In this document: positions 9,251 through 64,000 of the stretch, in pieces
Position numbering within the stretch: the first letter of the stretch is position 1
Layout of the letters: each line of letters opens with the position of its first letter
Assembly: GCF_963676685.1 (NCBI RefSeq)
Contig: NC_092345.1
Span: 89,652,001-89,716,000 of the forward strand
DNA: 64,000 nucleotides
Direction of reading: 5' to 3'
Source of the DNA: Mytilus edulis
Taxonomy: Eukaryota
Notes under the pieces: model-generated
What the model was told of the DNA's origin: nothing
The model's database searches: none
What the model saw: only the letters and a program-made list of their open reading frames with translations
Made by a program: the position numbers and the translations under genes

Positions 9251-10195
9251 TTGATGAAGTCTATAGAAAATGCATGTAGTATATTTGACAATATAACATT
9301 CACAATACACGGGGATAAAAGTAAAGCACGAATATCAATAATGTTCGGACAAAGTGATAATAAACAAAGAAAACGAAAATCAAAATCTACGGAACACCGA
9401 AATAACAAAAGAATGGCTGAATATATTCAAAAAGTTGCAAAAGTAGATGCATGTCCAGATAGAAATAAAAGTATTTTACAAGAAACTTTCAATATCGATG
9501 ATGATCGATTAAAGGAAAATGAAACCGCAAATCTACAGAGCGCAGAAACAAACACTATAGTAGGGAATGGTGAGCTTAAATTACAGGAAAATAATGCACT
9601 TTTTTCAAACATACATTCCGAAAAAGTGGAATTGGAAGATTTAAACAATGTTACAAAACAACCAGAAATTAGTGAACATCAATTATTCGAAACTATGAAA
9701 ACAGATGAAAGCGATACTACAATATCAACTCGAAATGAAAATCCAGAGCAGTCAGANNNNNNNNNNNNNNNNNNNNNNNNNNNNNNNNNNNNNNNNNNNN
9801 NNNNNNNNNNNNNNNNNNNNNNNNNNNNNNNNNNNNNNNNNNNNNNNNNNNNNNNNNNNNNNNNNNNNNNNNNNNNNNNNNNNNNNNNNNATATAACGGC
9901 TTTTGAAATCGACGATATTATTTCAAAAGCGGTGATAAAGAAAAGTAGACTGTTCTCTGATAAATTCATCGCGAAACTGAAAGGAACCGGGAACATTATA
10001 AAATATGATCGTGGATCTGATGAAGTAGAACAAGTGAATCCAAATGAAGTTGATTATCAAATATATAAGAAAAATGTAGAACATGACTTTGTGGACGTAA
10101 GAACTTATGGATTTCGTCCGGATGATACTAACGATAAACTTTTGTTGATGGCTAAATTTACTTTTGACAAAAAACTGTTCGTTTATATGAAATGA
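9251..10195 (+). CDS. Intronless ORF of unknown function, probably from a mobile element; spans an assembly gap
   Basis: 314 codons, open on both sides of the N gap; basic patch KQRKRKSKS; out-of-frame ATG at 9222 suggests a frameshifted start; A-rich tract at 10626-10659. Confidence 0.45.
   Translation: MMKSIENACSIFDNITFTIHGDKSKARISIMFGQSDNKQRKRKSKSTEHRNNKRMAEYIQKVAKVDACPDRNKSILQETFNIDDDRLKENETANLQSAETNTIVGNGELKLQENNALFSNIHSEKVELEDLNNVTKQPEISEHQLFETMKTDESDTTISTRNENPEQSXXXXXXXXXXXXXXXXXXXXXXXXXXXXXXXXXXXXXXXXXXXXXXITAFEIDDIISKAVIKKSRLFSDKFIAKLKGTGNIIKYDRGSDEVEQVNPNEVDYQIYKKNVEHDFVDVRTYGFRPDDTNDKLLLMAKFTFDKKLFVYMK
9757..9890. other. Assembly gap
   Basis: Run of N. Confidence 1.
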
Positions 10196-42745: not shown

Positions 42746-43229
42746 ATCAAATCATAAACCTGGTACCTTTGATAACTATTTATATAAAGAATTGTTTGAT
42801 AGAAAAATACGTAATTTCTTCAGAGTCCAAATGAAACATATTTGGTGAGTTCCTTTATCGTAATCCGACAAAAATGTAACAAAGAGGTTTTTTTTCTATT
42901 TCTATTATTTGGGGTATAAATATACATACACACAAACATGCAACATTCATAATTTCACACGTATACATCCACATCCACATCCATATCATTTTAGTCCAAT
43001 CAACCATCAATCTATCCATACAAACATTCACACAATTTTTACAAAATATGGTAAACCGATATCAGAAAAACAAAATGTGTAACCTTTGAGCTAGTTTAAA
43101 GCAATCATTGTTCTACTTGTTTCATTTCCATTGTTATTTCTGCTATGTTTGTACCTCTAAAGTTTCGAGGAGTCGATTGAGTGTGTAGTCAGTTGTACTG
43201 TTCAATTGTTAGGTGATGTTATGTTTTAT

Positions 43230-46200
43230 AACAATATATTTGTTGAGTTTGGAGGATTTATATTTCAACAGACAGTCGGTATTCCAATGGGTACTAATTG
43301 TGCACCCCTGCTGGCTGATTTGTTTTTGTATTCGTATGAAGCAGAATTTATTCAGAACCTTCTTAAAGACAAAAAGAAAAAGCACCTTGCGAAATTCTTT
43401 AATTTTACTTTCCGATATATTGATGATGTTTTATCATTGAACAACCCATATTTCAGCCAATACTTACATCTCATATATCCCAGTGAACTTGAAATTAAGG
43501 ATACTACCGATACTAGAAGGACTGCTTCATACCTTGATCTTTTCCTCAATATTGACGTAGATGGACGACTTCTCACGAAAATCTATGATAAACGGGACGA
43601 TTTCAACTTCCAAATTATCAATTTCCCATTTCTCAGCAGTAACATACCATACCCTCTGCCCCTTCGTATGGTGTTTACATATCACAATTGATACGTTATT
43701 CACGTGCTTGTTCACACTATACGGACTTCATATACAGGAGTGTGCTCCTTACGCAGAAACTGCTCCAACAAAGTTATGAGGAGGACAGATTAAAATTGAC
43801 ACTCAGTAAATTTTATGGACACCATCACGAATTGGTGTATCCATATGATGTCTCTTTAACCAAACTAGCTAAGGACATTTTTACCACATGGTAGATTGTG
43901 GTTTGTCATTATGTCGTCTAATCTTTTAATTACCAAACGTGACTTATTCCCGATTGTGACTGTTTTGCTGAATGTGAATTCGCATTACTATAAGACGTGT
44001 TTCTGTACTTGTTTATCCCAAATTCATGTATTTAGTTTACATGTTTAATGTTATATTTGTAATCCTCATCGGATTTTGTCAAATGTGTTGACGTCTTTTT
44101 ATTATATTTAGGTGTTACGGATAGAAAAATTAATCACCGCCTTTATTAATTATATTAAATTTTGTACGATTATTTACGTTTGAAGTTGGATTCATAACAA
44201 ACTGGACATATATATATTACAGTTAATTGCTATTAATAAGTATTGCAATAAGCATTTTGTTTAAATTAATTATCAGTATTTAGTTCTGATATAATCTTAA
44301 ATCAATCCTAATTCTATCTCACTTTGATAATTTTTCATATGTGACGTCATGCTGTTTCTAAATTTCATAAATTCAAATGTGGCATAACGTTTGTACCTTT
44401 TCGCCATCGTATGTGACGTCACATTTTTGTAATTACGTTGACGCCTGGACTGATTCGGGTGTGTCTATTCTGTGTTAAACTTTAATAGCATTATGTATTC
44501 GGGTTTAGTTTTCTGTAATTAGTTAATACTTCAGTTTCATTATGTATATCTCTTTCATATTCATTTGTTAAAATTTACTGTTTGCTATAGCATGAATTGT
44601 TCTATATAATAAGGATGTTCTTATCCCGGGCATAAAAACAATGCCGTATTTGGCAAAACCTTTTCAACTTTTGATCTTCAGTGCTGTACAACTTTGTACC
44701 TTTTTCACTTTCAATCTTTTATATCTGGGCGTTATGTATTCGGGTTTAGTTTTCTGTAATTAGTTAATACTTCAGTTTCTTTATGTATATCTCTTTCATA
44801 TTCATTTGTTAAAATTTACTGTTTGCAATAGCATGAATTGTTCTATATAATAAGAATGTTCTTATCCCGGGCATAAAAACAATGCCGTATTTGGCGAAAC
44901 CTTTTCAACTTTTTATCTCCAGTGCTGTACAACTTTGTACTTTTTTCACTTTCGATCTTTTATATCTGGGCGTCACTTGTAAGTCCTGTGTGGACAAGGC
45001 GCGTTTTTGGCGTATTGAATTTTAAACCTGATGCTTTTTGTTATCTATTAATCATGTTTTTCTTTGTCTAATATGTTCTGCTATTTATTTGTATTGTAGT
45101 CCTGTAATATTATGTTGTCATTTCAATGTTATATTTAACTTTGCCATTAAAGTGCGAGGTTTGGCATGCCACAAAACCAGGTTCAACCCACCACTTTTAT
45201 TCCCCTTTAAAAGTGTCCTGTACCAAGTCAGGAAGATGGCCATTGTTGTATTATTGTTCGTTTCTGTGTGTGTTGCATTTTAACGTTGAGTCGTTTGTGT
45301 TTTCTCTTATTTTTGAGATATTGAGATAAGACGTGGCACGGTACTTGTCTATCCCAAATTCATGTATTTGGTTTTCATGTTATATTTGTTATTCTCGTGG
45401 TGTTTTGTCTGATGCTTGGTCCGTTTCTGTGTGTGTTACGTTTCGGTGTTATGTCGTTGTTTTCCTCTTATATTTAATGCGTTTCCCTCGGTTTTAGTTT
45501 GTTACCCCGATTTTGTTTTTTGTCCATGGATTTATGAGTTTTGAACCTGATGCTATTTGTTATCTATTTGGCATTTGGCAAAACCTTTTCAACTTTTGAT
45601 CTTCAGTGCTGTACAACTTTGTACTTTTTTCACTTTCGATCTTTTATATCTGGGCGTTATGTATTCGGGTTTAGTTTTCTGTAATTAGATAATACTTCAG
45701 TTTCATTATGTATATCTCTTTCATATTCATTTGTTAAAATTTACTGTTTGCAATAGCATGAATTGTTCTATATAATAAGAATGTTCTTATCCCGGGCATA
45801 CAAACAATGCCGTATTTGGCAAAACCTTTTCAACTTTTGATCTTCAGAGCTGTACAACTTTGTACTTTTTTCACTTTCGATCTTTTATATCTGGGCGTCA
45901 CTAGTGAGTCTTGTGTGGACAAGACGCGTTTTTGGCGTATTGAATTGTAAACCTGATGCTTTTTGTTATCTATTAATCATGCTTTTCTTTGTCTAATATT
46001 GTCTCCTTTTTATTTGTATTGTAGTCCTGTAATATTATGTTGTCATTTTAATGTTATATTTAACTTTGCCATTAAAGTGCGAGGTTTGGCATGCCATAAA
46101 ACCAGGTTCAACCCACCACTTTTATTCCCCTTTAAAAGTGTCCTGTACCAAGTCAGGAAGATGGCCATTGTTATATTATTGTTCGTTTCTGTGTGTGTTG

Positions 46201-47111: not shown

Positions 47112-47305
47112 CTAAAACAGTGATTCATACAATATGTAATTAGATAAACCAGAGTTTCCTCCAAAAAGTCCATTATTTGATTGTGTATTTTGTTGTGCTT
47201 GTTGTTTCTCAAGATTGGCTAGCCTGGCAAGGATGACTTGAACATATCGCAACATTTCATTACCAGAATTACCAGCTCCTCCATGCAAATGTGACCCATG
47301 GATTC
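47112..47305 (-). CDS. Terminal exon E5: GIHGSHLHGGAGNSGNEMLRYVQVILARLANLEKQQAQQNTQSNNGLFGGNSGLSNYILYESLF*
   Basis: TTTCTTTACAG acceptor, phase 1; clear paralog of E4. Confidence 0.8.
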
Positions 47306-48793
47306 CTGTAAAGAAATTATAAAAAATAAAAATGTAAAAAAAGGCTTGGAAATAGTTATTGAAAAATGATACCAATTTGAAATATATTTATTGGTATCCA
47401 AGCATGCATTCTTGAAGTAATAGTAAATATGAAGTTATGTTATTGTACATAATTATATTGATAGTAATATTTAAGTGCTATGCTATAAGATATATAATAC
47501 ACATATAAATACAGTGCATAATAGGAAAAATGTATAGCAATAATTATACATACCTCAAATGAAGACAACTAATTTTGAGTTCTGTCCTATATGGGTACAA
47601 CATTTATTTGTTTTCACGATCACATATGATGAAGGCACTTTGGTTTTGTTTCAGTTAACTCTCAGTAAAGTTACAAAATTAAATATGTAAAATTGTATGA
47701 TACATTAATACATAACCATAAATCTAACGCCATGTTCGCACAAAGGTTAGCAAATTAGACTTCGAAAATATATAGAATAACTATTTGATAACTGTATGCA
47801 AGACTCATGAATGAGTATTAATCGATGAGCTCCAGTGCATCTCTCTCCTGTTTTGAGTAGAGTAAAAATAAAATATATGTTTTGAGACAACACATAGCTG
47901 GTTTCTTTATATTGCAACTCTTAGGGTAAGGTCGATCGATTCGGGTCTATATACCATGGCATAAAGAACCTTCATTAATATAACGACGATTAAACTTCTT
48001 TTTTATTTTAAATAATTATGAGCTTACATTCCCCGCAAAAATCTATCTGAATGCAGCAGAAAGGATAAATTTAGATATCTGATTTTCGAAAAGTATAATG
48101 ACAATGTTTGAAAATTAATAATTATCAGAACAAAACATTTTCGCGTTTGTATCAAACAAAAAGAATAAAACTAACATACGTAAATTTCGAGAAAATTAAA
48201 GAAATTTTTCACTCACTGTTTATCCACTCATACTTCTCAAATATACAGTACTGTTATGTGTTATCAATTGTAAGTCGTAAACAATACACGTTTTCAAGAA
48301 TAATAATATTAAAAACAAAAATCAACTAACATCATATCTTTTTATACTGCATTTGAAATTGTAATATCCTCTGATTAAATAAGCCAATGCTATATAGAAT
48401 TTCATTCAACTTTTGAACTGAAATCTGATATTTTTATAGTTATTAATACATACTATAGACACAACGAATTTCAAATCAGATAATGTAAAATGATTTATTT
48501 TTGCAAATTCAATTTACAATATTATTTCTATCATGTAATGAATAAAAGCATACAAACAAATATTTTCAAACAGAAACACAAGGTCGTGTGAGGATGTCCA
48601 ATATTAATAGAATTCGCCGTACTTAGATTGTCTAAAACTGTCATCTTAATTCATGTAAAACAAACAACATCATTTTTTGTGTAATTTTGTTTAAAACGTC
48701 GGTTGAAAATGTCTTTGCTGCTGATAATTTGATGAAAATACATAACCATATCCATCGATTTCATATCCTTTCGCAACTTAACAGCATGTATGA

Positions 48794-49023
48794 TCATTTG
48801 AACAAGTGTTCCATAACCATAGCATTTCGTAGACTGTTTCCTGAGCCGAACCAACCACCGCTACTTTGCTTTTTAGACTGTTGCTGTTGTCGTTCTAATC
48901 TCTGAATACGTGCTAGAATCAATTTGACATATTTCAAAAATAGGTCATTTGAGGTTCCTGATGTAGATGGTATGCTTGCGCCGAGGCCACCATGTGTATC
49001 CATTCCATATCCAGGACCCAAAC
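48794..49023 (-). CDS. Terminal exon E4: GLGPGYGMDTHGGLGASIPSTSGTSNDLFLKYVKLILARIQRLERQQQQSKKQSSGGWFGSGNSLRNAMVMEHLFK*
   Basis: TTTTATTTTATAG acceptor, phase 1; AATAAA near 48494; paralog of E5. Confidence 0.8.
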
Positions 49024-49128
49024 CTATAAAATAAAAATAATACTATGTTCTAAAAAGAGAAGCAATTATTTAAAGAATATTTGGAAACTTTAATGAATAT
49101 TTTTGCAATTTCTTGCAAACTAATAAGC

Positions 49129-49312
49129 TAACCATTTGAAGCTACATAACAAATACCTATGACGCTCTAAAGCTGCTGCTTAAAACATGTGTATTGCCCT
49201 TTGAAGCTACATAACAAAATGCCTATAACCCTTTGGAGCTACATAACATATATGTATATATAAAACTCTCTGAAGCTACATTACAAATGTTTATAACCCT
49301 TTCAAGCTACAA
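49129..49312. repeat. Degenerate ~32-bp minisatellite
   Basis: Recurrent CCTTTGAAGCTACATAACAAAT. Confidence 0.75.
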
Positions 49313-49493
49313 CAAAAACCGCCACAACTTTCATTCTATGTATACATTGTTTTTATTACCAATGCACATCTGTTAGTATTCAAATTCCAAAAACAAAATT
49401 TAAACATAGGGCTTCTAAATCTCATTTACGTTTATGGAATTGATGTTTTAACGATAAATGTTGTGAGTCGGTTTTAATATATTCCTACATAGA

Positions 49494-49770
49494 TAAATTC
49501 ATCATTGATACCAGGATGGAAATTTTATAGTTACGCCAGACGCGCGTTTCGTCTACAAAAGACTCATCAGTAACGCTCGAAGAAAAAAAATGGTAAAAAG
49601 GTCAAATAAAGTACGAAGTTGAAGAGCATTGAGGACCAAATATTCCTAAAAGTTTAGCCAAATACAGCTAAGGTAATCTATTCCTGAGGTATAAAAGCCT
49701 TAGTTTTTGCAAAAATTCAAAGTTTTGTTAACAGTTAAGGTATACTTATGAACATATCAATGATAACTTA
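49494..49770 (-). mobile_element. Retrozyme-like monomer with intact hammerhead core at ~49533-49577
   Basis: Minus strand GCGTTA-CTGATGA-GTCT(TTTGT)AGAC-GAAA-CGCGCG-TC-TGGCGT. Confidence 0.85.
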
Positions 49771-50393
49771 GGTTGCGATAACATCTTTAGTCTTGATTAC
49801 TATTAGTCTTATTTCATTAAAGTTTACGGTTGTGATTTTAAACGATTACCAACGTCCGATTTTTATTATTTTATCTAAATAGTCATTACGAGGCGGCAAA
49901 AGAAGTTATCAACTTAATGATCGCCGCAATAATCCAGGTAGAATCCAGGTAGGTAGAATTATTCAAATTGGTAATTTGAGGGTTCATTTGTGAATCCTTG
50001 TTTTTTCTTTTTTTTTCTCTTCACCTAACGTTTACTCTGCCTGAAGTGGTTGGAAACTTAATGTTTTAATATCTCTTAAATTATACAATGGGAATTTTAG
50101 TTGTGAAAAAATGGTATAAATCATGTCAGGACTGCAACCCCAACTACGGATATGCTGATAGCACAGGGGACTGCCTAGGTTTATAACACATTACATAATG
50201 CATGGTGCTAACTAGCGAATTTCTTCAATCGTAAAGGATAAGTGCATGTTCTAACAATGCAGTGACGTAAATGTGTTTCTTTTATAAGCGTCTTTGTGAC
50301 AACTTTACGACAGACTATCTCCTTTGGGTAACAAAGGGTTAAACAGGTATAACACCACAAATCACATATACTTCGTCTCAAATTTACCAGAAA

Positions 50394-50557
50394 AATGTTA
50401 GATCTGCAAATTTTGGTTCATTTCTACGGGACTTGAACTCATGACATCAAGGCAACTTTGCCTGCATTGTGTTCAACCCACTAGATTACACTGCCAACTA
50501 TAGGGCTATATAAATACAGCTTTTGAATGTCGAGCAATACTATTCATCCTCAGCGTT
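50394..50557 (-). mobile_element. Degenerate copy of the SINE at 1-241
   Basis: Minus strand TGCAGGC...GAGTTCAAGTCCCG...GAACCAAAATTTGCAGATCTAACATT. Confidence 0.6.
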
Positions 50558-52701
50558 ACCTAGGTTTATAACATGATGTAAGGGGGCATATAGAAGGAAT
50601 ACCAGGCAGATATGTTTGTCAGTCGGAAAGGACAATAAATACATGTACTTACCGTGTAGTCAAATGAGTGCCATCAACACCAAATAAAATTACACAACTG
50701 CATAGTTTCCTCCTCTAACTTAAGATGATAAAACAATCGGTTTTCATTTCGGGAGGTGTTTTAGTCTCGTATGTATTGAACAAGTACGACCAATTAGAAT
50801 ACAGTTCATGTAAATGAAATTGTGTAATGACTATGTAATGCATTTGAATATGACGGTTGTTTCCATTCGTTCCGTTGATTGATAAATATCACGTCTGATT
50901 TTGTCAGTTTATTTGGACTTCCCCCTTTTTTAGTTTATTTTGTACTTTAATCGGTTAGTTGTTTGGGTTTTAGGATACATAACAATTGTATTTATTTTTT
51001 AATAAAAAAAAAAATTGTTTATGCTAGCTGTGTTTTGTGCAACAACCCTTGTCTTTGGATTTGAGTTTTGTTATTGTTAATTAAACAAAGGCAAGAAATA
51101 CGTTTTACATAGAATGTGTCGGCTGTGTTAGACGAAAATGACTATTGTAAAACCATTCCAACGGGAAACCAACGGTCTTATCTATATAAAAATATGTTAT
51201 AACATAAAACATTTTGAAAATTGGAACTAACGTATTATTCTTATAATAGTTCTTATACCACTTTATTTCCTTGAAATAATGTATAAATCATACAAGCAAG
51301 TCTTTTAGATAAACAAATTCAAAACAATCTACGCATGTACGGTATCGATAAGAATAATCATTTTAAAAGAAAATTTTAGAAGGATATAAAAGGTGCTTTT
51401 GGGTCTGATACCTATTAATGATTACTGCTAAAATGTACGGTAAAAGAAACGATGTTACGACCCCTTTTTTGAAAAGGGATACTAAAATAAGACGATGTGA
51501 TACGGTTGTGAATCGGACAACTTTTTACCAGAGACTAAATGAAGTTGAAGTTAACAACTGTAGGTAGCCATAAAGACTTAAAAATTAACAAAACCTTTAC
51601 CACTCTAATTTGTCCTTATATAACAAAATGTACAAAATTCAATGAAAAAACATTTAAACGAATAAAAAATATGATATACAGCCGCATACAACATTACAGT
51701 CTCCTGACGCGAGAAAGCCATATACAGAATGTGACTGGGTTAAATTTGTTTTTTGACACCAAACCTCCGGGCCTTAACCTAGGACAAAGTTGTAACATCA
51801 CAATATAAAAAACATAATATACAAATCATTTAAAAAAACTTGATTCAACTGATCGTCACAGAGCAAAAAATAGTAACAAAAAGACTTAACATACAAAGTA
51901 CCGATTTATGAGTACTCACAATTATTGAAAAGTAGTTCAAAGCCAATAATAACTAATAAGAAAATCATTTATCGAAGACTAAAATATAATCCAGTATCAA
52001 CCAATACATTAAGTGTAAATACTTCATAATCAGTCTGAAAAACATGTTCTTCTGCAATCCCAAAATATAAGTATCGACAGAACGTGCATGTAGGACCGAA
52101 CATGGTTAAAGCTATATAGCAATGGCATTAAGTTATAATGTTATATATATTTTTTACCAAAATCAATGTTCTGCATGCATTGATTTCATCAATATTGAGT
52201 AATAATATAACTGTAAATCTATCAAAAGGAGTGAACCAAGTCCGGAAATTTCTGAGCGAACATGTACACAATACCAAAAAAATAGACGAAGGCGTAATAG
52301 CTTAATAACGGCAACAGTAGTATATCGCTGTTCGAAATTCATAAATAGATAGAGAGAAAAAAGTCTGCGTTACAAAGATTGATAGCAGTATCTACAAGCT
52401 TTTAATCGTGTACCTTTCTGATGTTTCTTGGAAAAACAAAAAGTCAATTAAGTTAAGCTTCAGGGTGTGTCCTATCTGATACATCATACCCATATGTTAC
52501 TCCTTACTGTCCAATCAGTTTGATTAGAGACGTTTTAATTGTTATTACTTTCTATTTCCAACTAACGTTAACTTAACTTAATCAAATACAGTTGTACATG
52601 AAGCATATTGCTAGCTTTAACTATATGATCAGCCTTGACTGTACTTATATTTTACTATATCTGACCTAAGATATTATTATATTTAAGTTTACACTCAAAC
52701 G

Positions 52702-54735
52702 ACTCATCCAAACTCTTTTAGGTCATTTTTTAGTAGCAATAAACAAAAAAACTATGTCAATTGGACATGCTTTGATACTATATATGCCCTTGAATTTTTA
52801 CTAGATAACATTTTTGTTCGCTTTGGGGATTCCGTATATCGTCAGATTATCGGAATTCCAATGGGGACTAACTGTGCACCACTTATTGCGGACCTGTTTT
52901 TGTATTGCTATGAGTTACAATTTGTGACAAAAATAAGCAAAGACCCATCGAAACAACATCTGATAAACAAATTTAATAATACTTTTAGATACTTGGATGA
53001 TATTTTGGCTCTCAATAATGACGACTTCAGTATGTATATTAAAGAAATTTATCCTGTTGAACTTACTTTAAATAATGCTAATACTAACAATGACCACTGC
53101 CCTTTCCTCGATCTTGATATCTATATCACTAACGGAAAGCTGAATACTAAAATTTATGATAAAAGACATGATTTTTCATTTCCTATAGTTAATTATCCAT
53201 TTTTAGATGGTGACGTTCCCTTGTCACCATCTTACGGTGTTTATATATCTCAACTTGTACGATTCGCTCGTGTATGTAACAATGTTTTAGATTTTAACGA
53301 GAGAAATTTATGTATTACTGAAAAATTATTACACCAGGGTTTTCGATATCACAAACTAGTCAAAACATTTACTAAATTTTATCATCGGTATAAGGACATC
53401 ATTCGTAAATATAGCTCAACATGCAGACTTCTTATACGTTCAGGTATTTCACATCCAACTTTTTATGGAAATATTCTTTATAAAGCACAAAGGTGTCAGT
53501 ATTCACCTCAAAAACTAACAAAACCTTTGAATAGACTTATTAAGAAGGGATATAGTTACGATACTGTTGTCAGGTCATTAAAGATTGCATATTTTGGCGT
53601 TAATATTGATTCACTTATAGGTTGCATTTCTGTAAATATTGACAATGCAATTTCCCATAGGAACTCCTTTTACGGCTAAAACTGTACCACTTTTACTATG
53701 AAGTTTTTGAAAAAAAATCTTATCCTAGAATTGAAAGTTCATATGCACCACATTTTTTTTCAAAGGTCAAAATATAGGGCTGTGCGGCATATTTTCAACG
53801 TTTATATGCCCTGAACTTCTCAGAGTTTAAACTTACACTAATTTTCTTAACTACCCCTACCTCGAATGAAAGGTTACCACAGATTTCAATGTAAACAATA
53901 TGCACGTGTTTATTTACTGGTAACATTCCCAAGTTCTGTCTCTGAGATATGGAACACAGAGAGCATAACTGGGAACCAGTATGTAAACAAAATGAATTTT
54001 CTATGAATATTCAATTACTCCCCAAAAGAGGCGTGTTTTGAGAAACAGCTGTATTTACAAAGTGCAACCTATAGGGTCTTTGCATCGGAACTAAACACAT
54101 TTATTCAAAAACCAGTTGTTGGCATGACACGGGTTATGTTCTTCTCATATATGTTATGATGGTATGATACTAAACCCCTAAAGGGAAGGATTGTGCCTGA
54201 TGTTCATATGATGAAATCATAATCTTTCAGTCAGTTTAATTGAAGTCTGGAGCTGGCATGTCAGTTAACTGCTAGTAGTCTGTTGCTATTTATGTATTAT
54301 TGTCATTTTGTTTATTTTCTTTGGTTACATCTTCTGACATCAGACTCGGACTTCTCTTGAACTGAATTTTAATGTACGTATTGTTATACGTTTACTTTTC
54401 TACTTTGGCTAGAGGTATAGGCGGAGGGTTGAGATCTCACAAACATGTTTAACCCCTCCGCATTTTTGCGCCGGTCCCAAGTCAGGAGCCTCTGTCCTTT
54501 GTTAGTCTTGTATTATTTTAATTTTAGTTTCTTGTGTACAATTTGGAAATTAGTATGGCGTTCATTATCACTGAACTAGTATATCTTTGTTTAGGGGCCA
54601 GCTGAAGGACGCCTCCGGGTGCGGGAATTTCTCGCTACATTGAAGACCTGTTGGTGACCTTCTGCTGTTGTGTTTTTTTCTATGGTCGGGTTGTTGTCTC
54701 TTTGGCACATTTTCCATTTCCATTCTCAATTTTAT
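52702..54735 (+). mobile_element. 5'-truncated Penelope-like element with an open RT reading frame, interrupted by a MITE
   Basis: GIPMGTNCAPLIADLFLYCYE and RYLDD motifs; native end IDSLI-GSLHRN* resumes at 54074. Confidence 0.92.
53620..54069. mobile_element. 450-bp MITE inserted in the RT C-terminus
   Basis: TIR GGTTGCATTTCTGTAAATA / TATTTACAAAGTGCAACC; TATA TSD at 53616-53619 and 54070-54073. Confidence 0.85.
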
Positions 54736-54962
54736 TGATTAAGTGCGAAGTTGACGAGTATGGTTTGGGCAAATATAGTCAAGATTGCGGTTTTTTTTTC
54801 GGAAAATGATAACCACATGAGACAATGAGACAACTCTTTATATAAGTCACAGTGTATAAAAATTTAACAGTTATAGGTCAAAGTACGGCCTTCAACGCGA
54901 AGCCTTGGTTCACACCTAACAGCAAGTTATTAAGGGCCCCAAAATGACTAGTATAAAACAAT

Positions 54963-55343
54963 AGACCACTTTCGAGTTCATCCGTCACTGAAAAAAACTC
55001 GTCAATTATACACGCCTTTATGACCTCATTTACCAGATAGAGGGGGTCGCCTGTATCCCTGCACTATTTACTTTCATCAAGCGTCTTAGTGATCGTCATT
55101 GTGCAGGATAAACTAGAAATTATGGTTGTTCTGTAGGTACTTAATGACAATTCCCTAATGACAGCAATGCTGATTGTCAATTTTGAGAATTCAATTTGCC
55201 GAATGATTCGTTCAATATAGAATTATAGTTTTCCAACCACTCGCTCAACATTGGAATGGAAGTGACGACGCCCCTAAACGCACAAATGACGTTCACTAAA
55301 ACCAGAGTTTTTGACGGAAATGCATCGAACTCGAAAGTTGTCT
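54963..55343. mobile_element. MITE with apparent AT TSD (ISL2EU-like), nested in a dispersed repeat
   Basis: TIR AGACCACTTTCGAGTTC / GAACTCGAAAGTTGTCT; splits the host motif AAAACAATTCAAAC. Confidence 0.8.
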
Positions 55344-55489
55344 ATTCAAACAGAACATCCAACGGTCTTATCTATATATATAAAAAAAACAGAAACGAGA
55401 AACACCTATTAACCAAACCAAAAAACGACAACCACTGAACAACAAGTGCCTAAAAATGCAGCGTGTTTACGTTTTAATAATGTATTATA

Positions 55490-56085
55490 AAAGAAGGACG
55501 AAAGATACCAAAGGGACAGTCAAACTCATAAATCTAAAACAAACTGACAACGCCATGGCTAAAAATGAAAAAGACAACAGAAAAACAATAGTACACATGA
55601 CACAACATAGAAAACTTAAGAATAAACAACACGAACCCCACCAAAAACTAGGGGTGATCTCAGGTGCTCCGGAAGGGTAAGCAGATCCTGCTCCACATGT
55701 GGCACCCATCGTGTTGCTTATGTGATTACAAATCCGGTAAATAGTCTAATTCGGTAGGTCACATTCATGAAAGGGAAGGGGATTGTAGTTACGACGTAAG
55801 GAACATATCCGATATCATTTGTGAAACGGTTATTCCATAACGGTCAACCAACTCGTGATGGCGTCCGTAAAATTTACGAAGGGATGATTTCAACTTCACC
55901 ATTTGGAACTCTTGGTTTAATAGCTTCCTTGTGAGCAGTAACCCTCTATCAAGAAAATCATGATAGGAAATGCAAGCACGGGAATATCGTATCAATTGGG
56001 AGATATATACCCCGTATGCAGGTGCTGCTGGAATGTTGCTACTTAGAAATGGAAAGTTCACAATTGGAAAGCTGAAATCATCTAT
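55490..56085 (-). mobile_element. Well-preserved Penelope-like 3' fragment
   Basis: ORF 55789-56061 NFPFLSSNIPAAPAYGVYISQLIRYSRAC...KFYGRHHELVDRY followed by the 3' repeat. Confidence 0.9.
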
Positions 56086-56179
56086 AACTACTTAAACAGA
56101 CACACTAAATGTCAATTGAAAAGGCTTAACTGATAAAAAAAAAAACATTTAAACAAAAAATATTGTTCAGTATAGTTAT

Positions 56180-56818
56180 GGTCAAGGAATAATAAATGGG
56201 CTATGTCGCAGATATTGCTAAAACTTTGCATACAACCTTGGCTCTGTGAACTACAACTGAAAATCGGAAAAATAATGCATTTGTCTCTTTTATTATCTGA
56301 AATATTACAGATTGATGTCTTTTGATATAGGTGAATATTTGTATAGAAAGCACATAGAATTGACGAATAAATATATAAAATTTGTCTTAAAATCGCCAAA
56401 TCTCTAATTCTTATCCATAGTTTTCCTTAAAAAAAATCTGTATGTTGTTGAGATAAATTTCTGTTTAAATGATATAAAATAATCATATGATCACCGACTT
56501 CGTTTTTTTTTTGTTGCCTTGTTGGTAGTGAAATATTTTTCACAAAAAAACACAACTTTTAATGATGTATACCGTAAAAACTATGAAGTAGAATTAGAGA
56601 TTTGGCGATTTTAAGACAAATGTTAGAAGGTATTATGCCGATTTTATGTTCTTTCTGTACAAATGTTCACCAATTTTGTAAGAACTCAATCAGTCATATT
56701 TTAAATGATAAATGAGAGAAATGCATAATTTTTTCCGATTTTCAGTTGAAGTTCATTGAGCCAGAGTTGTATGCAAAATCTTAAATATGTGACATAGCCC
56801 ATTTACTGTAACTTGAGC
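56180..56818. mobile_element. Fold-back element with long diverged inverted arms
   Basis: 56195-56425 is the diverged reverse complement of 56575-56803 (e.g. TTGTCTTAAAATCGCCAAATCTCTAATTCT / AGAATTAGAGATTTGGCGATTTTAAGACAA). Confidence 0.85.
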
Positions 56819-58050
56819 TTAAGTTCAACAAGCAAAATACGAATGTTTACAGTCTGTGATGTGTAAATAAGTTAAACGATTAAAGAAAAATAACAACAAC
56901 GTCACACTCTCACTGCAGCGTTTCATTATGTATTACAACATGTTGTCTGTTTTTTTATAGACAGCATGGTTCATTTGCCATTTTCTCGTACAATATAAAA
57001 ATGAAAAGATGTGACACATTTATAAAAGTGTGCTTATTTATCTTAACTTTTTAACTCTTCATGGAAAACTAAATAGATCTATATGGTGTGTTATTCTGGC
57101 CATGACACAAAAAGTTACGATATAAATAAAGACGATGTGGTATTATGTCATTGCCAATGAGACAAATATTCACAAGAAACCAAATGGCGCAGAAATGAAC
57201 TATAGGCAGTACACAAACGAACGAAAATAAATATGTAACACAACAACAAACGAAAACCACTTAATTACACTCCTGACTTGTGATAGGCACATACATGTAT
57301 ACAGATTGTCATGGGGTTAAATAGGTTATCGGGATCCCAACCCTCACCTTACCTGGGACAGTGGCGTAACAGTACAAAATAAGAAAAACAATGAAAATCA
57401 GTTGAAAAAGACTTCACTCATAACAAAAACACATAGTAGTCGTGGCCGGGTACTTTTACATCCTAATAACAAAAAGACACTAAGTATATATATCTGAGAG
57501 TACTCGCAGTTACAGACAGCTAGTTCAAAGCCAATGGCAATTTCTAAAATAAATCATACAGTTAAGACTAAATTACCATCAGTACACATACACATCCAAT
57601 GGAACTAGTGTAAATATGTCATACACAGTCAGAGAAAAACTTGACCTTGTGCAATGTCAAGATACAGGTACCGACATATTGTAGAGCCATGAATGTGCAT
57701 ATGAAACATTTGAAACAACAATGCATGTTTGTATTTGTTTTCTCTGATTTTCGCAGGTGTTTGACACACTAGCTATAGAGGAGGATTATACCTTATACCA
57801 TAAGCCACTTCTCGTTCTTTCAATACTCGAACTTAATTAATTCCAATGTCCAATTCATACCCGGTGTTGTTTCTTTTCTTATCTCCAATTACTTTTTCAA
57901 AAGAAATATTTTCTGTTTTACATTAGAAAATTTTACCATGACTATTATTTTAAATTTCAACAAAGATTGATCTTATTTCAGCAGAAATGATGCATTCCAT
58001 TAAACAGTTTGTGCATATACAAAACAGTTGTGTGTTGTATGATTCGTATC

Positions 58051-58460
58051 ATGACGTATACAAACAAATGTGAAGGATGGAATCGTGACGTTTACAAACA
58101 AATGTGCATAATAAGATGGAATAGTCACGTTAAGATACATTGGTGCGTAATAGGATGAAATAATGACGTTTATAACACATGTGTGCGTAATATGATTGAA
58201 TGGTGACGTTTACAAACAAATGTGCATAATAAGATGGAATGGTCACGTTTAGACACATGTGTGCGTAATATGATTGAATGGTGACGTTCTACAAACAAAT
58301 GAGCATAATAGGATGGAATCATGACGTTTACAAATGTGCGTTATACTATGAGCAAGATGGAATTGTGACGTTTACAGACAGATGTGCATGTCAGGATGGA
58401 ATCATGACATTTACAAAATGATGTTCGCTATATGATGATTTCATGACGTTACAGACATAT
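58051..58460. repeat. Degenerate ~39-bp minisatellite
   Basis: Unit close to TGACGTTTACAAACAAATGTGCATAATAAGATGGAATCG, about 10 copies. Confidence 0.85.
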
Positions 58461-59457
58461 AGTTTACACAAAATGTGTACATGGTAGCTGTTCGTTTGTT
58501 GTTCATTATTGTGATTGTTGTTTTGATTGTTCAAATTAAGTGCTTATATTTGTGAACATGTATTAAACACTGTAGTTGAACTCAGTAGTTTGTTTGAATT
58601 ACCGCACAGCAAGAATCATTTCTACAAGAACAAAACTGTGCTAGAAAAAGAGCAATAGATTGATAAGCGAATAGACAAAAGAAATGTAAAACAATACGAT
58701 ATGAACAATTTTCCCATATAAACAAAAATTTTCATCCTTTTCCTTCATTTAATGATATTTAACTGGCTTTCTAAGTGTATATGTGGATGCTAAAAGTGTT
58801 CCTTAAATATATTGGAACATTTATGAGAACATTAAACTCCTTGTACGGTGTGTTTTGATAATTCTAATACTGGGCATATCATGTCTGGCATTTGTAGATA
58901 TCAATGCCTAATTTGACTCGTATCTGGGTAATCAGAACATGGGAGCATAGAAGCAAGCTGATTGAATGAGAAAATCTGAGTTTATTTTGTACAGAAATGT
59001 GCGTATAAACATGAATTTGCGGTTAATGTTAGCGAATATACACAGCATAAAATATTAGCAGCAACTTTTGAACAAATCAACATAGATATATACATATATG
59101 TACAATAAAACAACGTGTAACGAAATTATTCAGCTTCTTGACTATATTTCACCAATGCCTGTGCAGGCAAGTACATCTATCTATCCTATGAGCTGTGTGA
59201 TAACTTGAATGTGTCAGATTAAAGTGTTGCACATTCTATAAGATTCATCGAATTGTCCTATTCTGTTAATACTGACAAGTAAAATAATACATTCACTAGG
59301 TGAATATTTCATTGGAAATATTATTAGCCGGTTTTCAAAACGTGCAACATTTTCTTCTTTTATCTTATACCTTTTTCAAAAGAAATTCGCATATTACAAA
59401 ATCAAATTATAGATTCCCTCCAGATCCTTAACTTATTTATTATTATTTCAAATATAT

Positions 59458-59708
59458 TTAGAACATTCCCATTTCGCTAAATAAAAACATATTGGCCATA
59501 TTGTTAAAAGGAAGGCCTTGTCTCATGCCACCTCCTCCTCCTCGCATCATTTGTGACATCATCATCATTGGCAGAACATTATCGTTCCCCATCATCATTG
59601 CCATGGGAAACATACTGTTCATTCCTCCACTTTGGCGCTGTGCCATCTGAGCTTTGGCTAATAAAGCTAACCTTGCTCTTTGTTCGTTCATCGCCTTGGC
59701 ATTGGCTC
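59458..59708 (-). CDS. Terminal exon E3: Met-rich, GANAKAMNEQRARLALLAKAQMAQRQSGGMNSMFPMAMMM...FLFSEMGMF*
   Basis: AATTTCAG acceptor, phase 1, in frame with ORF 59458-59691. Confidence 0.88.
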
Positions 59709-60353
59709 CTGAAATTATTTCGTCTTTTTTTAAAGATAGGTTTTAACAAACACATTGCGTGAGCCTTTTTGATATTAGTTATTTAAGGTAACTTGATGAA
59801 GCATTGATTGCTACAATCAGTTAGAAAGATTTGTAAGCACAGTAAAACTGTTGTGTGGCATCCCTACGTTTAACTTTTAGACTTTTTTTCTAATAACCAA
59901 AGTGATTTCCCCCTTTAATACAAAATTCAGCATAGGAAAAGTTACTATTTACTAGAGACAATATAGTATGCCATTTTTATGTATCACTATATTGATTAGA
60001 CTATATAACATGCATTTAGATCTAACATAGCAAGCTACACATATTATGCTTGTTAGCTTCAGTGAGATCATTGAAGAGAATAAAGGTTGATTGATAGATA
60101 TGTGTTTGGCTACAAATATAGACATCAAGCAAGCAAGCAAGAAATTAATTAATTAAACAAAAGCAAGGCTTACACCACGAGTTTGTTTAGTTTATTTTTT
60201 ACAAACAACAGCACGTGAAAAGCAAACAACACAATCAACAAATACAGGCCAAAGATGTCTGTTTTATAAATATCGACGGATAGTATCACACAGTCATTAA
60301 CGTTCATAGATCACATCTTATGTTACAGTCACTGTCTATGGGACACATTCAAC

Positions 60354-60673
60354 CTAATTAAACATGCGGTTCATTAAAAGCATATTCATAAGTCCGCCGC
60401 CACTTGATGATCCTTGGCCGGATGAAGCACCTCCTTGACCTTGGGACATTAATAAAAGTGGGAGCATAGATTCGCCCATTCCTCCTTCAGCCATCAACAT
60501 AAGGGGCATCATGCTTCCCATACCACTTCTGCCACCTCTACCGGACATGAGCATCTGAAGCATCAGTGGGTTCATTTTGCCACCTTTTCCCATTGCCATC
60601 AATGCTGGCAACATGGCACTGCTGCTACCTCCACGCATTTGTCTGGCTGCTGCTTGTCTGGCTGCTGCTTGAC
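60354..60673 (-). CDS. Terminal exon E2: Gly/Met-rich, GQAAARQAAARQMRGGSSSAMLPALMAM...MNMLLMNRMFN*
   Basis: GTTACAG acceptor, phase 1; AATAAA at 60191-60196. Confidence 0.9.
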
Positions 60674-61684
60674 CTGTAACATTTATTGTGTGTTATACTC
60701 GTTATAGAATGTCATTTTGTCCACTTTCCACGTGCTGTAACCAACATGCAGTGTGATTTAATGTTGCAATAATAAATACGTAAGAAGCCGTATTCATCAC
60801 CTACTGAAACAGTCTTTTCGTTATGATTGTTTATTTTTGCTTTTCATATAATTAACTTGAGAATGTTATAAGAAATAAAAATGAATATATGTACTGGACG
60901 ACTAAAGAAACGCAACACTAAAATGTATTTAAATTCGAAGGTTTGGTATTGCTTTTTGATAGATATAATGCTAGAATTCAAAACGAATCGCTCATTTTTC
61001 ATCAATAATTTACATTCTAATTCAAATTTAACGGAATTGTAAAATGAAAAATCAAATGCGAAATTAATTCAAAACTATTATCTGAAAAATAGTCTTTGTT
61101 TTAATGTTATCTTGCAGTATGACTTAAGCTACCCGCTCCCCTAAAAGAGAACGTTGGGATAGTTGTTCTTCTGTGATAGCTAGAAAAAAAATCTTACTTT
61201 ATTAATATAATTTGACAAAACTCTTTGGATTAAAGATGTTGATATTTCTATTACTATGAAGTAAACATCGTGTGTTTGAAATTAATTTTGAAAAATGGGG
61301 TGTTGTGTTTCTATATGCGTTCAGTTTATGATATAGTTGAAAACCAAAAGATTGTAATGTTCGTGCACTTGAGGTTATATGAGGTTTGTTTTCTGCTAAA
61401 AATCCAGCTGGTCTGACAGCCAATGATATGTTAATACAGGTACTCGGTCATTTACTTTAAACATGCACTTCAATGTAAATGATGAGGAAGGAAGAGGAGA
61501 GAAAACATAGAAGTATTACACGTGTTACATAAATGAAACACAAAACAAACAAAATGCATTCAATATATTTACTGAAAAACAACAAAATTGGATACACGTA
61601 ACAAAAAACCGACAATGTGACACAGTCTATGACACAATCCACACTTGCAGAAGTCTTGTGTAAAGAAGATTAGTGATGATTCCA

Positions 61685-61827
61685 TCATTTTCTTTGGTTC
61701 ATTAACAGAAATGGAAGCATATTAGTGTTTCCGCTTCCGCCCGAGAAAGCTCTACTAAACATTTGATAGCGCATGAGGTCCTTTCCAACATCGCTTCCCA
61801 TCATCATCATCATTCCTAAATTTGGAC
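61685..61827 (-). CDS. Terminal exon E1: GPNLGMMMMMGSDVGKDLMRYQMFSRAFSGGSGNTNMLPFLLMNQRK*
   Basis: Pyrimidine tract + TGATAG acceptor, phase 1; AATAAA at 61198-61203. Confidence 0.85.
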
Positions 61828-63467
61828 CTATCAAATATGATGAGAGACAAAAGTATAAGAAGAAATACTTATGTTCGTTTAATTGACTACATCGTATTGA
61901 AGTGTGCAAATCAAAATGTTTTTTGCTTTCTTAATAAATCCATTAATTATTTTTTTTTAAATTCATTACTTTGTCATTTAATTTTAATTTTTAAATGAAA
62001 ATCAAATTGATATGAAACCACATTGAAATTGATAACAAAAGTTAGGCTAAACTGCAGCTAATTAAAAAAAAAAGGTAGAATTAAAAATGTATATTTAAAT
62101 TTTTAAACTAAATTTCTAAATTAAAAAAATAAATTGCAGAATTAAAATTTGCTAATAGATCTACATATCTAACAGCTACATACTTGACTTCTACTCTACA
62201 GATATATACGTTACATCACCTAAGCCTTTGTAACATAATCGTTCTATCGATGTTATAAATATAATATTCTTCATATCAAAGTATGAATATTGAAAGTCAT
62301 AAGAAGGTCACATGGAAAATTATCAAGATTTTTTTGGCCGCTTCGTCATATTGACAGTTTAACTACTATTTCGCAAGATTCCAAAAATGCTTATATCTGT
62401 CAATTGTCACATGAATGACCGGTCGTATATAAAATCGCTGTCCTTCATGTTAATATTATGGATATGTTGACATTTTATTGGAGTCAGAGAGTGTGTTTCC
62501 AATATATAAGATAATTAATGCGTATACGAAGTTCTAGTGGATCTTAAGGCTTATCAGAATTTGTCATCAGATGCAATAAAAGGTGTATAAAATATTTTAT
62601 ACTGTAACGAAGTACCACAAATTGTCACAGCAAATATCAATAAAATTACCTAAGCGAGGAACTGGTATAAAGAACTGATAAGGAATGAATTAGCATAGCT
62701 AGCACTCATGTCAATGAAAATAATTAATTACGTATATATTTATAGATCTAGAACAAAATTCCATTTTCCTTTCTGCCATTTGAACAAAATTATTCTTAAA
62801 TTACAGGAAAATTTTACTTGAAAGATATTGAAAACAGTAAGTTATCCATCTAAAGAAATTAGTTCTTAAAACGTTTGTGCAAAGGATTGCTGTTAAAAGA
62901 CAGAAAAGTTAGTTCATTAAATCGTTGAGTCATGCGATACTAAAAACCGTGCAAATAGTTGACATATGAACCATAAAGTTTTCTCGTTCAATTGTTGAAT
63001 ATTTCAATCTGTTTATAAACTTTATCTATTAGATATTTGGAGAGAAGTAAAACGATATATAGAACAAATTCATGAATTCGAATAGCATCCACACATTCTC
63101 ATTTTGTTTGGATGAAACTTGGTTAACATCGCCATGACAACTCCTGTTGTTATATAACGACAAAGAAGCCGATGAAAATACAGAATTTATTTCACATGCG
63201 AAATTTCGGTTTTCACTTTTCTGAGAAATTAAGGTATTTCCTTTCTACCAACATTAATTAAACTTTTTTTCATTTTAACTAAACTAATTAACGTTGAAAT
63301 ATAAGACAATTTGCTCGAGTTTTTACAGTGCTGTTTTTGTTACCAAACACGACGTTATTGGAACTTGAAACTTACAAAATAATGAGGTTTTTTTGTTACA
63401 GTAGTCAACCTAATTTGCACGGTTGTATTTTGATATTGGTATGATATAATTGTGCATGAATACTCAC

Positions 63468-63537
63468 CAGCGGCCTGTGATCGGACATGAGCTACCATCA
63501 CACACAACACTAAGGCAATTATACATATGGACTTCAT
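63468..63537 (-). CDS. Signal-peptide (leader) exon MKSICIIALVLCVMVAHVRS-QAA
   Basis: TTTTACAG acceptor 7 nt before the ATG; classic n/h/c regions with V-R-S cleavage motif; G|GTGAGT phase-1 donor; a non-coding first exon must lie further upstream. Confidence 0.92.
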
Positions 63538-64000
63538 TGTGTTACTGTAAAATAAGCAAAGTCAATTATAAATACGGACTTCATTGTGTCTCTGAAAAAT
63601 GAGCAAAGTTAATTTATCGCTATGGTCTTAGAGTAAGAGGATTAACAAGATTTTGTGTGAATGTATAAAGAGATCTTTATCGCAACATCTTAATGGTTAA
63701 TTCAATTTAGGAGAACAAAACTTGTCAGTTCTGGACCATAAAGAGTTTATCAAAAGTGCACACAAGTTAACCAAATCGCGTCTACCTGTAATTTATTTCA
63801 ATGTTGGTTATATGCAAGTTCAGCGAATGGTTTCTGGTCAATTCAAAACAACATTGCATTTGTAATTAGTGTTGTCCTATTTTTTCTCGTGATTTTTGAC
63901 AGGAATAATTTGAATTTGGTTTGGAAATTTTGAGTTGGCACAAATGTCGTACATTAACAGATGATGAATAAACCACAAAGTCTGTTTTTCTTCCGCTCAA

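Follow-up and report, generated by a model that had tools for sequence, protein, structure and literature searches.

Architecture of the locus

The DNA analysed here, referred to as the window, is a stretch of 64,000 nucleotides from Mytilus edulis (contig NC_092345.1, positions 89,652,001 to 89,716,000). Close to its end the window contains a single short exon encoding a signal peptide, here called the leader, followed downstream by five exons, E1 to E5, each of which continues the reading frame of the leader and ends in a stop codon of its own. All leader and E1-E5 coordinates are window positions on the minus strand, and they are collected in Table 1 together with the other features described below.

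The leader consists of 23 codons plus one nucleotide and ends at a phase 1 donor, CTG/GTGAGT (a slash marks the exon boundary). Its translation has the layout of a signal peptide, with an MK n-region and a hydrophobic core of 14 residues, followed by VRS/Q. Cleavage after V-R-S, following the -3/-1 rule, would give mature proteins with the N-terminus Q-A-A-G, the Gln of which is a candidate for conversion to pyroglutamate. Each of E1 to E5 opens at a phase 1 acceptor (ag/G) and completes a Gly codon together with the last G of the leader. The predicted products of the leader and one exon are 70 (E1), 129 (E2), 106 (E3), 99 (E4) and 87 (E5) amino acids long. The arrangement had been proposed in an earlier reading of the same DNA, made from its letters alone (the sequence-only reading), and the intact leader with its phase 1 donor, the five acceptors, the Gly codons, the stops and the product sizes were all recovered as it had described them. 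It had seen polyadenylation signals behind most of the exons; AATAAA or ATTAAA was found behind all five stops, at distances of 482 (E1), 158 (E2), 17 (E3), 295 (E4) and 82 (E5) nucleotides.

The local guanine plus cytosine (GC) content rises over the exons (0.49 in E2, 0.41 in E3 and 0.39 in E4, versus approximately 0.30 in the surroundings). E1, E2 and E3 are single-copy in the genome, and E4 and E5 match only each other. The spacers between E1 and E2 (1011 nucleotides), E2 and E3 (645 nucleotides) and E4 and E5 (1488 nucleotides) are too short to comfortably hold a promoter, a first exon and an intron; E3 and E4 are separated by approximately 10 kb.

Immediately upstream of the leader lies one copy of a 47-nucleotide tandem duplication. 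An acceptor-like AG in the upstream copy would place the exon start at 63591. The same copy contains an ATG (63584), from which a 16-codon upstream open reading frame runs up to a TGA that overlaps the main start codon (ATGA). Use of the upstream acceptor would thus add this reading frame to the mRNA.

Table 1. Positions of the exons, of the matching public sequences and of further features (window positions unless a contig is named)
Feature	Position	Strand	Description
5' untranslated exon	66038-66099 (window-equivalent)	-	Approximately 2.5 kb past the window end; matches L008 nucleotides 1-62
47-nucleotide tandem duplication	63512-63605	-	85% identity; copies the leader acceptor, the 7-nucleotide 5' untranslated part and the first 8 codons
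Leader exon	63544/63537-63468	-	Acceptor ag/TAACACA (start 63544 with the downstream copy); ATG 63537
E1	61827-61685	-	Acceptor ag/GT 61827; stop 61687-61685; 46 amino acids after the junction Gly
E2	60673-60354	-	Acceptor 60673; stop 60356-60354; 105 amino acids after the junction Gly
E3	59708-59458	-	Acceptor 59708; stop 59460-59458; 82 amino acids after the junction Gly
E4	49023-48794	-	Acceptor 49023; stop 48796-48794; 75 amino acids after the junction Gly
E5	47305-47112	-	Acceptor 47305; stop 47114-47112; 63 amino acids after the junction Gly
Poly(A) hexamers (pattern scan)	61203; 60196; 59441; 48499; 47030, 46976	-	AATAAA of E1, E2, E3 and E4, respectively; ATTAAA (two) of E5
L008, 5' untranslated exon	nucleotides 1-62 of contig		Match to the 5' untranslated exon
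L008, leader	nucleotides 65-141 of contig		Match to the leader
L008, E2 and beyond	nucleotides 139-1100 of contig		Colinear match to 60674-59705
L009, leader	533-604 of contig	+	Genomic, divergent mytilid; upstream acceptor; donor CAG/GTCAGT, phase 1
L009, E1-like exon	3428-3576 of contig	+	54% identity to E1; own stop
L009, E2-like exon	4462-4775 of contig	+	60% identity to E2; own stop
Conserved intronic stretch	60700-60745	-	Just 5' of the E2 acceptor; matches L009 4400-4461 (+)
Tandem-repeat-like reading frames	58000-58420	both	In the E3-E4 intron
Transposon-like reading frame	55789-56061	-	In the E3-E4 intron
Transposon-like reading frame	52861-53679	+	In the E3-E4 intron
RVT_1-like fragment	43206-43691	+	E value 0.003, below the cut-off
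Neighbouring gene	31655-25923	-	
Neighbour, leader	31655-31607	-	Donor AAG/GTAAGA
Neighbour, Cys-containing exon	approximately 31478-31321	-	
Neighbour, large exons	29609-27218; 26949-25923	-	Low-complexity; phase 1 start; own stop
Run of N	9757-9890		

Splice junctions from the leader

Database searches were run exon by exon, and the junctions were taken from public sequences in which exons are naturally joined. A search with E4 returned a cluster containing XP_076094322.1, a 99-residue "uncharacterized protein" annotated as isoform X3 of LOC143064966 in Mytilus galloprovincialis. This protein consists of the leader joined directly to E4, and 98 of its 99 residues are identical to our prediction, with one substitution. 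The leader region of X3 in turn retrieved XP_076094323.1, isoform X4 of LOC143064966 (86 amino acids), which is the leader joined to E5 and differs from our prediction by a one-codon indel and one substitution. In both isoforms the 24 N-terminal residues are those encoded here, with no differences. Judging from the near-identical products and the single-copy exons, the locus is the orthologue of LOC143064966. The more distant E4 and E5 had been regarded as the weaker part of the proposal, but leader-E4 and leader-E5 turned out to be the best documented junctions.

A third junction came from public metagenome contigs, where a scan with a degenerate leader pattern returned two loci, L008 and L009. 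L008 (Ga0314667_10177372, 1101 nucleotides) is spliced and transcript-like, and comprises a 5' untranslated exon, the leader and E2. Its leader-E2 junction falls exactly at 63468/60673, skipping E1, and its open reading frame encodes 129 amino acids. L008 carries one copy of the duplicated segment, a hybrid of the two (MKSVF... versus MKSIC...), and not the tandem pair, and the 5' untranslated exon is joined to the upstream-copy form AGACACAATG. In the present genome the 5' untranslated exon ends with the donor CAC/GTAAGT. A TATA-like TTTAAAA (window-equivalent approximately 66100-66145, minus strand) precedes the first base of L008 by about 40 nucleotides, which points to a promoter just beyond the window end. 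At its other end, L008 continues past the E2 stop, the AATAAA and the whole E2-E3 spacer and ends five bases into E3. The E2 poly(A) site is thus read through in some RNA, and such read-through is a prerequisite for the use of the distal exons.

Taken together, we find it likely that the locus is one transcription unit, with a 5' untranslated exon, a single signal exon and five alternative terminal exons. Alternative last exon genes are recognised by one promoter with shared 5' exons and by at least two terminal exons with their own acceptor, stop and poly(A) signal. The former is seen here in the exons of L008, the genome-unique leader, the identical leaders of X3 and X4 and their assignment to one LOC, and the latter in all five exons. 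The phase 1 donor of the leader would pair with one of the five phase 1 acceptors, and cleavage and polyadenylation behind the chosen terminal exon would end the mRNA. Use of a distal exon would need the proximal acceptors to be skipped and their poly(A) sites to be read through. The outcome would be five small, Cys-free, low-complexity secreted proteins with only the signal peptide and Q-A-A-G in common. The mutually exclusive use of last exons behind one leader, the core of the sequence-only reading, is thus borne out for E2 by L008 and for E4 and E5 by X3 and X4. We infer the leader-E1 and leader-E3 junctions, the use of the individual poly(A) sites, a regulated choice between exons and a role of the products in matrices or other biomaterials.

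Several points weigh against this interpretation. The documented junctions cover three of the five exons, leader-E1 and leader-E3 being unobserved, and L008 derives from another individual or species, with 95-97% nucleotide identity. Isoforms X1 and X2 of LOC143064966 were not found among leader-sharing proteins of 54-173 amino acids, and in the search of cluster representatives they may be hidden within 50% clusters. That the NCBI pipeline (Gnomon) adds isoforms only with transcript support is general background and not a result of this analysis. Finally, two public gene models join the exons in series via internal GT sites: CAG2195223.1 from M. edulis chains E3'-E4'-E5 and CAC5410772.1 from Mytilus coruscus chains leader-E4'-E5. 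The statement in the sequence-only reading that the exons cannot be chained was accordingly too strong.

The two models could indicate a gene with composite exons, in which the terminal exons are mostly internal, spliced onwards from weak phase 1 donors (59532 and 48856) into longer products such as leader-E3'-E4'-E5, while the stop-containing tails are used only where polyadenylation beats splicing. Weak internal phase 1 G/GT sites are indeed available in every Gly-rich exon, and X1 and X2, absent from the size range above, could be longer proteins of this kind. However, the internal donors, GAG/GTGGCA at 59532 and GTG/GTTGGT at 48856, have consensus scores of at most 3 out of 6, versus 5 for the leader donor. 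CAG2195223.1 is without a signal peptide, and in CAC5410772.1 the leader is buried behind 51 extra residues, whereas X3, X4, L008 and a further open reading frame from a divergent mytilid (P0013, see below) all finish in a full terminal exon. The absence of X1 and X2 is uninformative, since the protein database is also without the 129-residue product of L008; for the same reason little can be read from a search of the 5.8-billion-protein set with E2, which was blank. As X3 (99 amino acids) and X4 (86 amino acids) fit a numbering by falling length, our guess is that X1 and X2 may correspond to the leader-E2 (129 amino acids) and leader-E3 (106 amino acids) products. We regard a composite-exon gene as very unlikely. 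The two chained models are probably artefacts of predictors unable to model alternative last exons, and minor chained isoforms may exist alongside the terminal-exon isoforms.

Conservation in other mytilids and the surrounding sequence

The second metagenome-derived locus, L009 (JYMV01006359.1, 5357 nucleotides), is genomic and originates from a divergent mytilid. It contains a leader, an E1-like exon and an E2-like exon in the same order as in M. edulis, and both exons keep their ag/GT phase 1 acceptors. No second leader was found between the E1-like and E2-like exons. The 3' untranslated region of E2, including the AATAAA, is well conserved in L009. Conservation between the two extends to an intronic stretch just 5' of the E2 acceptor (ACAGCACGTGGAAAGT...), although the E2 proteins are no more than 60% identical; this stretch may be an element that regulates splicing or provides the branch point. 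Furthermore, the leader of L009 (24 of 24 residues) is fused to E4/E5-type sequence in P0013, a 99-residue open reading frame from ENA contigs no longer than 1.2 kb, so the two kinds of exon have a common leader in the species of L009 too. For E3, orthologous open reading frames were found in M. edulis (P0005, identical over 54 amino acids) and in another mytilid (P0007, 65% identity).

In M. edulis the leader appears to have no second copy from which the other exons could be served. A degenerate pattern covering the conserved half of the leader, with at most two mismatches, has exactly one occurrence in the 1.37-Gb assembly, and a 24-nucleotide leader probe with three mismatches matched only the leader and its broken copy 47 nucleotides upstream. 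Sensitive BLASTN and tBLASTN searches of the window plus 30 kb upstream revealed no further leader-like exon, and a scan of every spacer for mini-exons with an ATG, a hydrophobic stretch and a phase 1 GT gave no credible candidate. The claim that no intact signal exon lies between the terminal exons is thus upheld by spacer scans, BLAST and the genome-wide pattern alike. A decayed leader seen by eye in the E2-E3 spacer (approximately 60080-60000) was rejected as chance, as both BLAST against the leader and the exon scan were negative.

These results bear on the possibility that the locus is a tandem cluster of two-exon genes whose own leaders were missed or were lost by assembly collapse. Phase 1 introns after signal peptides are the rule, so the phase match alone proves little, and the 47-nucleotide duplicate of the leader start exists. 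Yet the leader occurs once genome-wide and the spacers contain none, in L008 the leader is spliced past E1 to E2, and the leaders of X3 and X4 are identical in the RefSeq assembly, which together with the L009 order of leader, E1 and E2 contradicts the assembly collapse that the sequence-only reading had named as a way to be refuted. A cluster of separate genes is hence extremely unlikely.

The two exons without an observed junction need separate consideration. It could be speculated that E2, E4 and E5 are the only live last exons, and that E1, E3 or both are decaying duplicates, transcribed as intron or 3' untranslated sequence and yielding no protein. In E1, which is short, 482 nucleotides separate the stop from the first AATAAA; E3 has a poor pyrimidine tract at its acceptor, and as L008 passes from the 3' untranslated region of E2 straight into it, E3 could be read-through. 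On the other hand, the E1-like exon of L009, at 54% identity, has an open frame, a stop and the same acceptor. The E3 reading frame is likewise kept in M. edulis and, with its C-terminal motif retained, in the mytilid at 65% identity. The two frames have stayed open although the genome is AT-rich, and the GC content rises over the exons. E1 sits within the intron removed in L008, and E3 within the intron implied by the RefSeq model of the leader and E4. Both exons need a phase 1 donor giving a G, and the leader is the sole such donor nearby besides the weak internal sites. We consider decay of E1 or E3 quite unlikely, and retain a gene with five alternative terminal exons as the preferred interpretation.

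Some further features were noted around the exons. The E3-E4 intron contains two transposon-like open reading frames with a common Y-G-V-Y-I-S-Q-L-(I/V)-R motif, which partly explain the 10-kb gap and do not belong to the coding gene; the one at 52861-53679 had no match in Pfam. The same intron contains tandem-repeat-like open reading frames on both strands (...HHSIILRTHV... repeats), probably a minisatellite. An RVT_1-like fragment and one run of N are found elsewhere in the window. The neighbouring gene has a leader of its own, a Cys-containing exon and two very large low-complexity exons that each start in phase 1 and have their own stop, which is the same alternative last exon layout. The C-terminal part of its second large exon weakly resembles E3 and E5 (tBLASTN E values of 0.03-0.5).

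Predicted proteins and their significance

The five exons were described in the sequence-only reading as encoding Met/Gly-rich proteins. This holds for E1, E2 and E3, with 20, 19 and 23% Met, respectively, and 12-20% Gly (20% in E2), but not for E4 and E5, with 4% and 2% Met. A motif of the M-x-P-hydrophobic type (M/x-x-P followed by four hydrophobic residues) occurs once in E1, four times in E2 and twice in E3, and is found at the same four positions in the E2-like exon of L009. E4 and E5 are paralogues, with approximately 40% identity (E value about 1e-12) and a central, helix-like L-I-L-A-R-I/L...Q-Q segment, which is amphipathic in E4. Cys is absent from all five mature parts. Pfam contained no match to any of the mature parts, and the ESM Atlas, queried with a single protein, the leader joined to E4 (P0002), returned no usable match.

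Comparison by hhalign of E1 and E2 with E3, which have the M-x-P motif in common, gave probabilities of 43-54%. By eye, E3 is also similar to E4 and E5, both in a helix segment and in its C-terminal tail (hydrophobic-x-E-x-hydrophobic-F). A common origin of all five exons was considered and is not established: a hidden Markov model of E4 and E5 misses E1-E3, and hhalign gave a probability of 2-3%. As there is no statistical support for homology between E1-E3 and E4/E5, the presumed Met/Gly-rich family is really two families under one leader. The proposed expansion of the locus by duplication of terminal exons stands for the E4/E5 pair and is plausible for E1-E3.

Genes with common 5' exons and mutually exclusive 3' exons with their own poly(A) sites are exemplified by CALCA (calcitonin/CGRP), lola and mod(mdg4), and such arrays grow by exon duplication. 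CALCA- and lola-type genes share much mature sequence between their products, whereas the mussel locus shares the signal peptide and four residues only, so that the mature proteins would be essentially unrelated products of one promoter.

A closer parallel within molluscs is the FMRFamide gene of Lymnaea stagnalis, in which the signal peptide is encoded by a 5' exon that is the only part common to two mRNAs and is followed by either E2 or E3-E5 of that gene; the FMRFamide gene of Helix aspersa is alike, and a similar case is found in Haliotis asinina (PMC4208409). The Lymnaea gene resembles the mussel locus in sharing the signal exon only and in yielding different secreted products. However, it offers two choices, one of them a multi-exon branch, and encodes neuropeptide precursors with processing sites, whereas the mussel locus has five single-exon, low-complexity branches. 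No regular KR/RR-flanked repeats and no regular dibasic or amidation sites were found in the translations, which have just an RK at the C-terminus of E1 and a single KK in E4; the locus is not a neuropeptide-precursor gene, though it is FMRFamide-like in its splicing. In insect serpin genes, such as PpSerpin-1 of Pteromalus, duplicated alternative C-terminal exons diversify a secreted protein (PMC12758981). There, the exchange is limited to the reactive-centre loop of an otherwise constant, large serpin body, whereas in the mussel the whole mature protein is exchanged.

With regard to function, Pinctada LMP, NU-5 and MRNP34 and scallop abductin are secreted proteins with Met-rich low-complexity regions, often with Pro (PMC7591529, PMC13080008), and Met-rich matrix proteins of shell and ligament are roughly 45-120 kDa in size (PMC7591529). 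E1-E3 have the Met-rich, low-complexity composition of such secreted bivalve matrix proteins, and E4 and E5 do not. The likeness of E1-E3 to LMP, NU-5, MRNP34 and abductin is in composition only, the known proteins being much larger. In Pinctada, insoluble proteins of shell and ligament typically have Met-rich regions that often contain Pro as well, and an extracellular matrix role is on that analogy a reasonable guess for the mussel proteins, albeit one that we would expect to fail more often than to hold. It may further be speculated that the locus acts as a secretory switchboard, by which cell types or life stages each pick one of five unrelated matrix-type proteins through coupled splice and poly(A) site choice; the larval versus the adult shell field, zones of the mantle, or the ligament-forming isthmus may be examples. 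Duplication of terminal exons, as opposed to that of genes, may then be a widespread and overlooked route by which bivalves have diversified their secretomes, the neighbouring gene for a secreted protein having the same layout. We regard these ideas as doubtful.

No paper on the locus, and no name or function for it, came up in text searches with exact peptides, the LOC number or the contig accessions. The multi-isoform nature is already present in the public RefSeq annotation of LOC143064966, which represents the same locus in M. galloprovincialis from a different assembly, although the isoforms retrieved document E4 and E5 and not E1-E3. The mechanism is also known, and no paradigm is changed. 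What is unusual, and in our view notable, is that there are five predicted branches, each a single exon with an entire unrelated mature protein, and that this is conserved across mytilids.

The proteins of bivalve shell, ligament and byssus consist largely of fast-evolving sequences of low complexity, and their diversification is usually credited to gene duplication and domain shuffling. At the present locus one signal exon would serve five complete mature proteins belonging to at least two sequence families, an arrangement kept since distant mytilids diverged. Such products would be undercounted or wrongly joined in surveys of proteomes and transcriptomes that rely on gene counts, and in two published Mytilus annotations these exons are chained, giving a protein that is probably spurious. 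Where unrelated proteins have identical signal peptides, this can point to a single gene and not a gene family. The locus is also a compact natural system in which the competition between splicing and polyadenylation could be studied.

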